This document shows positions 5,101-11,100 of a DNA stretch of 55,401 bases, one piece after another (position 1 is the first letter of the stretch; each line of letters opens with the position of its first letter). The stretch is taken from the NCBI GenBank assembly GCA_033442325.1, contig JAWQFM010000025.1:653507-708907 (forward strand), given 5' to 3'. Both the position numbers and the translations under genes were made by a program. The DNA comes from Salpingoeca rosetta. Its lineage: Eukaryota; Protista; Choanoflagellata. Below the pieces are notes generated by a model. It did not search any database and had not been told where the DNA came from. It saw nothing but the letters and a program-made list of their open reading frames with translations.

Positions 5101-8100
5101 TGTCGCATTCTGGACGAGTGCAACAACCCGCTCAACGACGAGCAAGTTCGCGAGTGGACAAAGGTGCGTTGGCTTCGATTGTGGACAATGGTGGTGATGG
5201 TGGCGGTTATGATGATGGAGGTGGTTGTCGTGGTGTTAGTGTTCGTGCTGCAAGGGGAAGAGGGGACAGGCATGGCTCGCGCACGTCATTGCTTCCTCCA
5301 TCACCAGTTTTGCATGACCACCGACCTGCTAACTTTGCACATATCTGCCTGTGTGTGTGTGTGTGTGTGTGTGTGTGTGTGTGTGTGTGTGTGTGTGTGT
5401 GTGTCAACAGGAGATTTGTCCGGGCCCGCTTGGATTTGAAGTGGAGAAACCCGAGATGATCGATCCCAAAAACGTCAAACTCTGTGACCACGTCGTCGCC
5501 CGGGGGTGCGCTCGCTCCGGCTGTATTGTGGCATCACCCAATGACTCGCACACGCTCTTTCTTTACTCCCTTCCCTGCACGCAATGATATGCACGCATTC
5601 CTTGTGTCGGCGCCTGATTGTGACAACTCACATGTTTCACCGACATTAACAACAACAACAACAACAACATCATCATCATCATCATCATCATCATCATCAT
5701 CATCATCATCATCATCATCATCATCATCATCATCATCATCATCCCCACCACTATCAGAGACATTGCGCGTATTCAAATGGCGAATTACGTCCGCAATGGA
5801 ACTGCAATCCCAGCAGAGGCGAAGATCCTCAGCAGCAGTGCCAACGACGAAGGTGATCGCAGCTGCTGCATTCAATTGTGCACATGTCACTGACACTTGC
5901 TGCTGCTCTTCTTCGAATCGTTGAAAGCCGTCGTCGAAAGTCACGGACGCTCACCGCCTTCTCGAACACACAAACACAATACACACACACACACACACAC
6001 ACACACACACACACACACAACGCACGCACGCACGCACGCACACACAACGCACGTGCCCAACTGCTGATTTGACCTGAGCAGCTCGCCGCAGCTTTATGGT
6101 GGAAGCACACCTCTTGCACAACCTCCGACACAAGAGTGCGTTCATTGTCTTTGCATGCAGTTGTACGTGCTGTGCCGTGTTAGTGCCCATGTCGCAATCG
6201 CACATGACCTCACGTCCTCACGCATCGTCTGACCCACATACCTTCTCCCCTCTCACACCTCACACTCACTCACTTACTCACTTACTCACCCACCCACTGA
6301 CATTGCGACTGCAACCAGACATTCTTCGCATTTTCGGTGTGTCTGTTGCCGGCCAGGCGTGGTGCATCGTCACAGAATTGCCGTTTCGCGGGCGCCTCAA
6401 GAACTTTCTCAGAAACCACGTGCGTGCGTGTGTGCGTGTGTGTGTGTCAGAGTGCGATGTACTGCTGTGCGTTATGAAAGACAAACTGCTTTCTTCAGAG
6501 ATGCGAATGCATGCACCCACATACGCTCTTTGTATTTTATCATGTGTGTCACCCTTTGCTCGCCCTCACGTGTTCGCGTGTTCTCTCTTGTGTGGCATCA
6601 GGCCCACAATCCGGAGATGCGTGAGCTGGGCGATAAGCAAAAGGCGGAATTTGCACTCGATATTGCAAAGGGGATGCAGGTGAGATGTTAACACCTTGTG
6701 ATGATCATGAGCGTGTGTACATGTGGGCGTCTTTGTTCTTGCGTCACATTGAGGTTCAAGTGTGTATGCGTGGGTGCGCTGTCTCGGCATTGGTCGCCCA
6801 TGTAGGATGCACTGCTGGTGTCCTTCTCATATTCTGGTGTCACCACCACCAACAACAACAACAAACAAACAAACAAACAAACAAACAAACAAACAAACAA
6901 ACAAACAACAACAACAACAACAACAACAACAACAACAACAACAACAACAACAACAACAACAACCGCTTGCCACCATTCTTTAGTTCCTTGCGTCGTACAA
7001 CTGCATCCACCGGGCTCTCATCGCTGCACACGTCGCCATCAGCGAGGACTGGACCTGCAAGGTGTGTGTGTATGTGTACACATGTGCGAGTGCTTGCCTT
7101 TGGGATTACATATGCTGGATTTGGAACACATGTGTTGTATTGTTGTTGGGAATAACGCGACGAGTTGGTGCTTGTGTTGACGATACAACCCTTCATGCTG
7201 TTGTGTTCAGATTGGCGAGTTTGGTTTTGCGAGGCGTCTGCACCGTGGCTGCGACGAATACGAAATGTGAGTCACATGTGTTGTGTTGTCGTGTTGTCGT
7301 GGTGGTGACAACGTTCTGCGTTGCTTTTGGACATGTTTGATCCTGACATATTCGGTTCCATACACTCACACACATATACGCACTCACGCGCTCACACACT
7401 CTCACACTGTCTTTCTCCACCCACAACCGCTGCCTTCACCATCATGCCCTCAGTTCGAGCCAGGTGTTCCTGTCGCGATGGCAGGCGCCGGAAGTGCTAA
7501 ACGAGCACAAGTATCGCCTGCGCAGTGACGTGTGGTCATACGGTGTTGTCCTTCACGAAATCTGGAGCAAAGGCCGCGACCCATACACCACAGACGGATG
7601 GTGAGCGGCAGACAAGGGGGACAACACGTTTGTTTGCTGAAGAGAAGCTTGTGCTGGTGATATGTTATACGTGTGGTGTGTGTGTGTGTGTGTGTGTGTG
7701 TGTGTGTGTGTGTGTGTGTGCGTGTGCCACGGTTTTCGTTCTTGTTCTCTGCACTGAAAGTGTAATGCAAATGTTCATGCGTTCTGTTCCTCGCCAACGC
7801 ATTTATTTCGTCGTCTTGTTCACTTCTTGTGTTTTGTCCTTTTCAGGAACGCCCACAACTTTGTTGAGCGCCTCAACCGTCGCGAGCGCATGGCACCGCC
7901 CTCGGTGAGATAGCCACACACACAAACACACACATACACACACACACACACAAACACACACACACACATGCCCTTGTCCGCCCGTCCCCAGCACATATGC
8001 ACGTGTTTTGAACTTACGCACGCACGCATACAAACACGCGCGTACAGGACTGTCCGAAGCGCATCTACGACATGATGCGCGACTGCTGGCACCCGGATGA

Positions 8101-11100
8101 CCACCTCCGCCCAAGCTTCAACGAGCTTGTGGTACGCACATGGTGCTGCATGTTTGGGCAAAAACGGGACTGGCGATAGACAGTTGCGTTTGGTATCACA
8201 TTGTGTTGCCCTGCTTGTGGGCACCTTGTCCCTTCTTCCCCGCAAACATGCCCCCTGTTATTTTCGCAAGTGTCCTCAAACAGTTCTCACCTTTGTTGTT
8301 TGTGCACTTTCTGTTCAACCCCCGTGTTGCAGGATGTGCTGACAGCGCTCGTGTTCAACGGCGATTTTGGCGCCAAAGACTTTGAAGTCCCGTCAGATTT
8401 CTACCAGGGTCAATACATTGACGTCTCTGGCGTTGAGGTGAGCCAACCACGCACACTGCACGTGTGTGTGTGTGTACGTGCGTGCGTATGTTTCTCTGTG
8501 TGTCCGTGTGTGTGATTGTCTCGACACACGTACAAGGTTTCTTTCTCTCTCTCTCTCTCACTCTCTGACTCCCTCCCTCTCTGACTCTCTTCCACACACT
8601 GCCACCCCTTCTCTTCACCTTTCTTCGCCGCAGGACGAGACGGTCGACATGGACATGTCTGACACAAGCATCAACCGCTCCGTTCTGTCCATTTTCCGTG
8701 CGGTCATGGGCGGCAGGAGCGCCCGCACAACGCGACGCGCTCGTCCAGCCCAGGCATCCACAACCAGCGCCACCATGGCAAGGTGTGTGTTCTTTTGTGT
8801 GCGTGTGTGCGACAATGTCGGCTGTGGTCATCGCTTGTGTGTCATTGCGTTCGAGGGAACTCACAACAACCGCTGTGATTTGTCACACTTATTCCTTCTC
8901 ACCTTCTCGTCCAATCGTCCACACGCAATCACGCGGGCCTGCAGGACCAGCCGCTTCTCGTTTCTGTATGGCGCCATGCGGGGGCGTGGCACTGCGCCTG
9001 TGCTGGCGCCGGATGCCACCATGGACGAAACATTTAGCCACGCTTACCATCGTGGCTCGCCCTCCAGCAGTCGCCCGTACTCTGTCTGCAACACCACTGG
9101 CAACGGTGACCCCGAAAACCACTACAGCCTCGCTGGTAATCGCTGCTGTGCGTGTTGTGTGTGGGTGTGTGGGTGTGTGGGTGTGGTGTCCACGCATCCA
9201 TGCACATGTGAGTTTGAAAATTTTCAAGTGAACATCGCACAGCATAGCTGACCAATCAACACAGAACCTCTTCCATGCTTACTCACACGTCAACCACATG
9301 TATCCCCACGTCCAGCCGACCTTCACGAGAACGCAAGCTACACGCCAAACTACACGCCGAACCTCAGCCCGATTCGTGGCGACGCCTCCATCAGCTCAAG
9401 TTTCTCCGGTGCGAAAATGGTTTTCTTCGTTTGCAAGAGAAGCGATAGTGGTGGTGGTGGTGGTGGTGGCGATGGGATCGTTTGGTATGGTGGTGTGGAT
9501 GCTCATATGGTGTCGCCGCTGGTTTGTACCTTTTGCCTTTGACCCGCCATCCATTCCCCCCCCCTCGCACTCGCGCTCACATGTCTCTCCCCTCGCACTC
9601 GCGCTCACATGTGGGTACACGCTATCACCGTGCAATTTCCTCCGACATTCCAGAGCCCGCTGTTGCGGACATCAAGGCGTCACCGCGCGTTGGACGGATG
9701 GTACTGACGGAGAAGCCGCGGCGAACACCACCAATGCCCCCGCAACTTGCCCGCACCAGCACGCACATTGGAGGTTGGCGTATTCGACAGCAGATGTGGT
9801 GCACTTTTGTGTGTGTGTGTGTGTATGGAAGATGGTGGTTTGTTACACGTGGCCTGCTTTAGCGCGGTGATGGCAACCTTGCATCTTCTCTCCGTCGCTG
9901 ATTCTTCCCCTGGTTGTGTGACTGATGAATTGCGTTTAGAACGCGTGCCCAAAGCGGACTTGATTCCAAAGCCTGCCGACGAATCCCTCCTCCACGCCCG
10001 CAAGTTCCCTTCATATGGTGCGCCTTGATGTTAGCCCCATTGAACCCATTCACACGCACGCACGCACGCACACACACACACACACACACACACACACACA
10101 CACACACACACACACACACACACACACACACACATTGTGCTTGTTGCGCGTTGCCACTGTCCCTCGTCCGCCTCACTGACACCGCTCCCCCCTCCCTCCA
10201 TCTCTGCTTATTCTGCTGTGCCACATCAGCCATCGCTCAACGGTCGGCGAGTACTGAGGAGCCGGTGTATGCTGTTGCCAACGGGACGCCGCAACCCACG
10301 TCGTCATCGTCATCGTCACACCATCGGCGCAACATTGCCAGCGTGGTGTACACGCCGCAGCCGTTTACGACGGCGTCACAGGAGCCGACGCCAGGCACCG
10401 CGCAGCGACACATGCACACGCACGCACACCGCAAGTACCTGACAGCCATGCACGAGAACGAGAGCCTGGTGGATGATGCGGACTACTACTACGCTCGCAA
10501 CGACACGACGAGCAGCAGCAACAACGACACCACCAGGGATGATGTTGGCAACGGCGCACGGTTTGACGACGAGAGCGTGATGGAGGCACGTGCAACCATG
10601 GCCAACAGCAGCCGCGTGCTGCGTAGTGCTTCCCCCATGTACACAAACGCAACAACAGTTCAATGGCAGAAGCACCTGCAGCGAGCCCGCCAGCAGCAAC
10701 ATGCCGCCGCACGCACAAAGGTGCTGTGTTTTGTGTGTTTTGTTTTTGAGGGTGTGAGTGTGTGTGCACATTGAGCTGGTTTCTTGGTGTGCATATGTTT
10801 GACTGACTTGTCACGCGTCTCCTGTCTTGGTGGTAATGCAGGCGTATGAAGTGGTGAGCCCGGAGAATTTCAAGAAGGACGACAGCCTTGTTGGCAGCGA
10901 AAACATGAGCATCTTTGACGGTGTGTGTTTGGGCGTGGTGTGGGAGAGGCGGTGAACAAGTGTTGTGTGCCGTGCGACTGCTGTTGCGTCCATCCCTCCA
11001 TTCATCAGACATGTTCTACACACACACACACACACACACACACACACACACACACACACACACACTTCTCATTCGTTTTATTCAGCTGACTCGAGCGCCC

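Follow-up and report, generated by a model that had tools for sequence, protein, structure and literature searches.

The window analysed here, a stretch of 55,401 nucleotides from Salpingoeca rosetta, holds a real receptor gene. Its conserved, kinase-dead domain most likely derives from an active Eph-like kinase and is kept for a non-catalytic job, for which a scaffold or co-receptor role is proposed. The gene is the public S. rosetta model XP_004988257.1 (EGD80195.1; UniProt F2UR92), labelled "TK protein kinase" and referred to below as P0151; the public annotation already lists it, but under no more than this generic kinase label, and the accessions F2UR92, EGD80195 and XP_004988257 were not found in the literature searched, including the supplements of PMC11984502 and PMC8662651. 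Exact spliced mapping and tblastn place the 1271 amino acids of P0151 and its stop codon, residue for residue, on 29 exons at 2227..11841 of the plus strand (the strand of all gene features given below), with GT-AG at all junctions and an incomplete 5' end. An earlier note, written from the letters of this stretch, had reported an immunoglobulin (Ig)-domain receptor tyrosine pseudokinase at 5411-8131; the coordinates were right but the extent was not, as this range corresponds to exons 9-18 of the 29-exon gene.

The pseudokinase domain is encoded by eleven exons within 5411..8437 (5411-5505, 5758-5852, 6082-6135, 6319-6419, 6602-6679, 6984-7061, 7211-7266, 7454-7600, 7847-7904, 8048-8131, and 8333-8437), delimited by splice sites and open frame. 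Three-frame translation with a splice-site check found an AG acceptor and a GT donor at each exon with matching phases, and the joined exons give 317 residues with zero stops, identical to P0151 residues 419-735, so that the kinase exons do stay in frame as had been proposed. Four single exons match the Pfam profile PK_Tyr_Ser-Thr collinearly (profile positions 63-95, 117-142, 167-206, and 228-255), and the whole of P0151 aligns to this profile (PF07714) at full length, from position 6 to 257 of 258, with 211 bits against a curated cut-off of 23.1 bits and an E value of 2.5e-62, a score and coverage that exclude a chance match. The best 60 solved-structure matches are tyrosine kinases (EGFR, FGFR, MET, CSK, and Eph; ∼140 bits each), and receptor and cytoplasmic tyrosine kinases also make up the relatives found in the databases, which indicates kinship with tyrosine rather than Ser/Thr kinases. 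In the protein atlas, the matches were generic kinase clusters only. The tyrosine-kinase signatures HRDLAARN and P-x-x-W (in the P+1 loop) are replaced by HRALIAAH and F-L-S-R-W, a degeneracy to be expected in a dead descendant of a tyrosine kinase. No alternative exon coding for HRD, AARN, or an activation-loop DFG was present on either strand of 4900-8600, which rules out a hidden canonical exon in the introns. In addition, the transcript-derived protein of the Microstomoeca roanoka orthologue (P0008) aligns across all junctions between the kinase exons with only one gap over 257 positions, and this collinearity gives independent support for the splicing in S. rosetta.

A pseudokinase is defined here as a kinase fold missing at least one of the beta-3 Lys, the HRD Asp, and the DFG Asp; in P0151, the HRD Asp is Ala and the DFG Asp is Glu, and the beta-3 Lys is retained. 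The motifs were read from an alignment of 52 relatives, comprising P0151, P0008, and 50 others (Eph, FGFR, Met, Ret, Axl, EGFR, Fes/Fer, and protist or environmental receptor kinases). The Gly-rich loop is degenerate and reads V-A-R-G-D-I-A (5495..5505, continued at 5758-5767), with two of the three glycines of the active kinases lost. The beta-3 motif AEAK (5813..5824), aligned to VAIK/VAVK, keeps its Lys (Lys472) and carries Glu (Glu470) in place of the adenine-contacting Ala of AxK, and the alpha-C helix Glu (Glu489; 6102..6104) is also kept. The catalytic loop reads IHRALIAAHV (7005..7034), where H-R is kept, Ala replaces both the catalytic Asp (codon GCT, 7014-7016) and the Arg of AAR, and His stands in for the Mg-binding Asn (7029-7031). 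DFG is replaced by EFG (7217..7225; Glu codon GAG at 7217-7219), in which the activation-loop F-G is preserved. The activation-loop tyrosine Y602 (C-D-E-Y-E; 7259..7261) is conserved in M. roanoka. The APE motif (7485..7493) is kept within a family signature, F-L-S-R-W-Q-A-P-E, from which the P+1-loop Pro has been lost, and the alpha-F Asp and the subdomain XI Arg are kept as well. The motifs that the earlier note had listed (IHRALIAAHV, EFG, VARGDIA, and AEAK, with RWQAPE, SDVWSYG, and CW..RPSF intact) are thus all present where it had placed them. Departure from HRD....N/DFG is found only in P0151 and P0008, and all 50 other aligned sequences are intact. Judged by established kinase enzymology, the kinase-fold domain would no longer be able to transfer phosphate. 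As a separate observation, an unrelated HMMER match of 1757 amino acids (P0117) reads H-R-A-L-Q-A-Q-H at residues ∼1060-1090, with S-G-L-G for DFG, and is another HRA....H pseudokinase.

The dead motifs recur outside S. rosetta. A HMMER search of 1.84 billion representatives with a 49-residue exon as query gave, as its best single-stretch match, P0008 (1242 residues; 81% identity), a complete open reading frame from the M. roanoka transcriptome (EukProt), and P0151 itself was found by a database search with the kinase region of P0008. The M. roanoka protein keeps ..GDIA.., E-A-K, an identical HRALIAAH, and EFG. Two short peptides with F-L-S-R-W-Q-A among the HMMER results led to the genomic fragments L001-L005, of which L001-L004 come from marine metagenomes with a guanine-cytosine (GC) content of ∼54% and L005 from a Logan assembly with a GC content of 31–34%, compared with ∼55% in S. 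rosetta. Their exons are orthologous to those of S. rosetta and share its intron positions (tblastn and ungapped exon matching). The L005 fragment (1-1789) reads H-R-A-L-T-A-V-H and EFG; EFG is also kept in L002-L004, whose contigs stop short of the catalytic-loop exon. Across the whole representative library, the F-L-S-R-W-Q-A signature is confined to S. rosetta, M. roanoka, and the L fragments, and a scan of metagenome contigs with an alignment of the two orthologues returned three weak Ig-domain matches only and no further family member. The family is accordingly counted in four lineages, namely S. rosetta, M. roanoka, the marine-metagenome copy, and the source of L005. The APE motif of the marine copy (L001:1-1280) reads A-L-E.

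Conservation is concentrated in the domain that has lost its catalytic residues. Between S. rosetta and M. roanoka, identity is highest in the kinase domain, the best conserved part of the protein, at 66.9% with one gap, compared with 39.5% for the ectodomain, 41.7% for the transmembrane and juxtamembrane region, and 37.4% for the tail, and the stretch from the dead catalytic loop through alpha-F reaches 72–82%. The ratio of nonsynonymous to synonymous change (dN/dS, or omega) was estimated over shared exons from Nei-Gojobori counts against the marine-metagenome copy and L005, as a contig search for DNA encoding P0008 found none. Against the marine copy, the proportions of nonsynonymous and synonymous differences (pN and pS) are 0.205 and 0.62, giving an omega of 0.18 over 140 codons, and against L005, dN is 0.30 with dS saturated over 162 codons; these estimates are rough, yet far from neutrality. 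Together with the motifs kept in M. roanoka and two further organisms, these values bear out the proposal of a maintained dead kinase rather than a pseudogene, and the pattern indicates that the dead domain has been kept by purifying selection in at least four lineages. A domain held almost constant in this way points to a non-catalytic job.

The nearest relative outside the family is a protein of 940 amino acids from Salpingoeca urceolata (P0152; 35% identity), in which HRD..N and DFG are intact; it consists of two tandem intact tyrosine-kinase domains, with no Ig domain and no recognisable ectodomain domain. A maximum-likelihood tree was built from 41 kinase domains after 12 near-duplicates had been removed at 90% identity, with PTK7, ROR, RYK, and InsR outside the sampling. 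In this tree, the P0151/P0008 pair lies inside a clade with 98/97 support that contains the Eph receptors and several protist receptor kinases and is separate from the FGFR/Ret/PVR, Met/Axl, Fes/Fer, and EGFR sequences. The inner branching of the Eph-containing clade is weak (82/70 and 88/75), and the stem of the pair measures 2.25 changes per site, compared with 0.13–0.51 for tips, a length that leaves the exact sister group uncertain. The branch lengths and motif states suggest a burst of change followed by constraint, starting from an active Eph-like receptor kinase. Such a placement agrees with earlier accounts, in which several receptor kinases of choanoflagellates are described as weakly Eph-like (PMC4054682) and Eph is united in one clade with a choanoflagellate family (PMC8662651). 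According to the literature, receptor tyrosine kinases diversified separately in choanoflagellates and animals (PMC4342544). Of the two origins that the earlier note had offered, independent or ancestral, independent evolution is the one that agrees with these results, given that all 50 other relatives, S. urceolata included, keep HRD..N/DFG and that the stem of the pair is long and private.

The complete protein is predicted to be a type I membrane receptor with an Ig-like ectodomain, one transmembrane helix, a tyrosine-kinase fold, and a tail of ∼536 residues. The ectodomain exons (2227-2838, 3266-3371, 3569-3627, 3850-3918, 4134-4214, and 4386-4500) encode Ig-like domains and one weak PKD/Ig-like module according to Pfam, with matches to Ig_3 (three stretches, 80.5 bits), I-set, and Ig_2, and a weak PKD/BiPBP_C match at residues 244-311. 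In a single-exon Pfam search, a 208-residue exon upstream of the kinase exons likewise matched Ig families, and the expectation of Ig domains upstream of the kinase domain was thereby confirmed. The transmembrane-helix exon (4775..4889; residues ∼361-385) was recognised by its hydrophobicity and a weak match to Pfam TM_ErbB1 and is followed by an Arg-rich stop-transfer stretch. The sole strongly hydrophobic 19-mer in P0151 starts at residue 366 (Kyte-Doolittle 2.98), and both orthologues have one strong hydrophobic helix followed by an Arg or Lys run. Exon mapping assigns the juxtamembrane exon to 5067..5163 and the cytoplasmic tail to ten exons at 8634..11841, the latter also by alignment with M. 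roanoka. The M. roanoka protein, which is complete, begins with a hydrophobic segment of the kind expected in a signal peptide, and its ectodomain of ∼455 residues ahead of a Thr-rich stalk could accommodate four or five modules. The Ig-like ectodomains contain only two to three cysteines in all (P0151 residues 1-355; P0008 residues 1-480), which implies that most of the Ig modules are without the canonical intradomain disulfide.

The 5' exons of the S. rosetta gene have been lost to an assembly gap, a run of Ns at 1157..1975, and comparison with the M. roanoka orthologue puts the loss at ∼130 codons, from the signal peptide through the first Ig domain into the beginning of the second. The true start is not the annotated Met at 2227, because residue 2 of P0151 pairs with residue 134 of P0008 in the alignment and the frame upstream of this Met is open and homologous to M. 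roanoka back to an AG acceptor at 2197-2198; the ATG at 1125, immediately before the gap, could be the true start. The region is otherwise typical choanoflagellate DNA, with short exons and introns filled with microsatellites. Long repeats of (GT)n, (CAT)n, (CA)n, (CAAA)n/(CAA)n, and (TCA)n occur in nearly every intron (3090-3250, 5343-5404, 5651-5745, 5975-6050, 6846-6962, 7677-7722, and 7921-7970), and the exons are free of them.

Tyrosine motifs outside the kinase fold give a possible outline of how a receptor of this kind would signal. Just past the kinase domain, Y-Q-G-Q-Y-I-D-V (8402..8425; Y724 and Y728) is a candidate phosphotyrosine docking site that is conserved in the four lineages as Y-x-G-Q-Y-I-D/E-V. 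The tail is poorly conserved overall between S. rosetta and M. roanoka and contains seven conserved tyrosines together with conserved islands, including E-E-P-x-Y (Y959), M-Y-x-N (Y1083), L-S-P-I-R-G-D-A-S..S-S-S-F-S-E-P, P-K-A-D-L-I-P-K-P, and S-P-E-N-F-K..D-D-S-L-V-G-S. The acidic context of E-E-P-x-Y959 is one that we take to be typical of tyrosine-kinase substrates, and Y1083-x-N presumably fits a Grb2-type SH2 consensus. SH2 proteins are very numerous in choanoflagellates (PMC4342544). In the proposed mechanism, the dead domain would offer an active tyrosine kinase a module for protein interaction or allostery; Y602, Y724/Y728, Y959, and Y1083 would be phosphorylated in trans and recruit SH2 proteins; and the receptor, in the manner of human receptor pseudokinases, would serve as a co-receptor and scaffold that senses a ligand or a contact. 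A close paralogue was considered as the partner kinase and rejected, since no close paralogue was found in the S. rosetta genome, where the next-best match is only 30–37% identical. A more specific account, to which a fairly low probability is given, is that a small choanoflagellate Eph-like family lost catalysis once in a burst and that its domain was then kept in the manner of HER3, as an allosteric partner with a trans-phosphorylated, SH2-docking tail.

Several points weigh against a conserved, non-catalytic scaffold receptor. The omega values are rough, with dS near or beyond saturation and a very different base composition in L005 (GC 31–34% vs. ∼55%); the transcript support comes from the M. 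roanoka orthologue and not from S. rosetta reads; the conservation of the tail motifs rests on two full-length sequences only; and the partner kinase and the ligand are conjectural, as is the scaffold mechanism. The kept beta-3 Lys and alpha-C Glu and the acidic residue at the DFG position may, moreover, allow nucleotide binding or weak non-canonical activity. Carried further, this last point becomes the proposal of an atypical but active kinase, in which the kept Lys and Glu operate, the Glu of EFG binds metal, and another residue acts as the base. Some kinases once called dead act through such non-canonical residues. Both full-length orthologues retain Lys472 and Glu489, as well as the activation-loop Tyr, and strong constraint would suit an enzyme as well as a scaffold. 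An active kinase is nevertheless improbable, since five separate nucleotide- or metal-binding elements have changed at once (the Gly loop, the Ala of AxK, the Asp of HRD, the Asn, and the Asp of DFG), together with the two residues that bind substrate in tyrosine kinases (the Arg of AAR and the P+1-loop Pro), and human EphA10, which shares the HR(x)....H pattern, counts as catalytically dead (PMC13259870 Table 2). The lost catalytic residues, the adjoining assembly gap, and the false annotated start could also be read as signs of a decaying pseudogene or of a sequencing or annotation artefact. This is the least credible of the alternatives: 29 of 29 exons are open with canonical junctions, the changes are spread over several codons in different exons and are shared by three other lineages, the M. 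roanoka copy is a complete open reading frame from a transcriptome, and an omega of ∼0.18 goes with a domain that is the best conserved part of the protein.

A non-catalytic receptor of the kind preferred here might also be an orthologue or an ancestral form of the Wnt-linked receptor pseudokinases PTK7, ROR, and RYK of animals, and the PTK7-like or ancestral scaffold suggested in the earlier note would belong here. The common plan of an Ig ectodomain, one transmembrane helix, and a dead tyrosine-kinase domain favours this reading, which is very unlikely on the remaining evidence. The substitutions differ, HRA....H/EFG standing against HKD....N with ALG, DLG, or DNA (PMC13259870 Table 2), the ectodomain of the complete M. 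roanoka orthologue has four or five Ig-like modules instead of seven, and there is a long tail that PTK7 is without. PTK7, ROR, and RYK are absent from the best 60 solved-structure matches and from the 53 database relatives. The pair groups with Eph-like kinases, whereas PTK7/CCK4 has been placed in an insulin-receptor-like subgroup (PMC8662651), and its nearest relative is an active kinase. Receptor kinases are also held to have radiated separately in choanoflagellates and animals (PMC4342544). Membership of the PTK7 family was therefore rejected on motif states, Ig number, tail, and structure matches, alongside a tree without PTK7 sequences, and the suggestion of the earlier note is not supported in this respect.

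If P0151 is a conserved, non-catalytic receptor, then non-enzymatic receptor signalling, known from human HER3, PTK7, ROR, RYK, and EphA10/B6, also evolved in the choanoflagellate lineage by a separate route. Should the HER3-like account be true, pseudokinase regulation of receptor signalling would have arisen outside animals, independently, and in a form that is genetically testable in S. rosetta: the gene is single-copy and genome editing has been used in this species (PMC11984502), so that its role can be tested. The new elements are the family itself, the finding that four lineages conserve it, and the evidence that it is under selection; neither the idea of choanoflagellate receptor pseudokinases nor the gene itself, which is already annotated, is new. 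As a receptor pseudokinase independent of PTK7, it is of modest interest as a further case.

Receptor pseudokinases in choanoflagellates have already been proposed (PMC3584944). Members of the Monosiga brevicollis RTKB family are without catalytic residues, and they belong to a family and a species different from those of P0151. Cross-species conservation and selection are shown here for the P0151 family, and are not known to have been shown for the RTKB members. The database search returned no M. brevicollis protein as a close relative.

Human receptor pseudokinases work by scaffolding, allostery, and trans-phosphorylation, and the motif states of eight of them have been tabulated (PMC13259870 Table 2). 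In that compilation, PTK7, ROR1/2, and RYK keep HKD....N with DFG changed to ALG, DLG, or DNA, EphA10 has HRG....H and GFG, EphB6 has HRS....S and RLG, and HER3 has HRN....N and DFG (PMC13259870). PTK7 (CCK4) shares with P0151 the Ig ectodomain, the single transmembrane helix, and a dead tyrosine-kinase domain with non-enzymatic signalling. It differs in having seven Ig domains, where P0151 has three Pfam Ig stretches and M. roanoka has room for four or five; in its motifs, with HKD....N, ALG, and GxSxxG in PTK7 and HRA....H, EFG, and AxGxxA in P0151 (PMC13259870); in being without a long tail (PMC13259870), compared with the ∼536 residues of P0151; and in its placement in an insulin-receptor-like subgroup (PMC8662651), where the P0151 pair groups with Eph-like kinases in a tree built without PTK7 or InsR. 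A motif scan for PTK7-type sequences (HKD with ALG) found none among the fetched proteins. Only a functional analogy with PTK7 remains, that of an Ig-bearing receptor with a dead kinase domain.

The set of residues lost in P0151 resembles that lost in EphA10 and not that lost in PTK7. Human EphA10 and EphB6 are, like P0151, single-pass receptors with a dead tyrosine-kinase domain that has lost the catalytic-loop Asp; in EphA10, His moreover replaces the Asn (HRG....H) and the Asp of DFG is gone (GFG) (PMC13259870). The differences from the Eph receptors are that P0151 is without an ephrin-binding domain, Cys-rich region, FN3, or SAM, only Ig-type and kinase domains having been found by Pfam, and that the beta-3 Lys lost in EphA10 (VAVH) and EphB6 (VAIQ) is kept in P0151, whose Gly loop is degenerate. 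The Eph pseudokinases arose as paralogues inside the Eph family of animals, so the loss pattern that they share with P0151 would be convergent. HER3 (ErbB3) differs from P0151 in that it keeps DFG, the Asn, and ATP binding and has close active paralogues, of which S. rosetta has none that is close. The likeness to HER3 lies in the way of working, as its inactive kinase domain acts as an allosteric partner and its tail tyrosines are trans-phosphorylated and recruit SH2 proteins, which is the model proposed for P0151.

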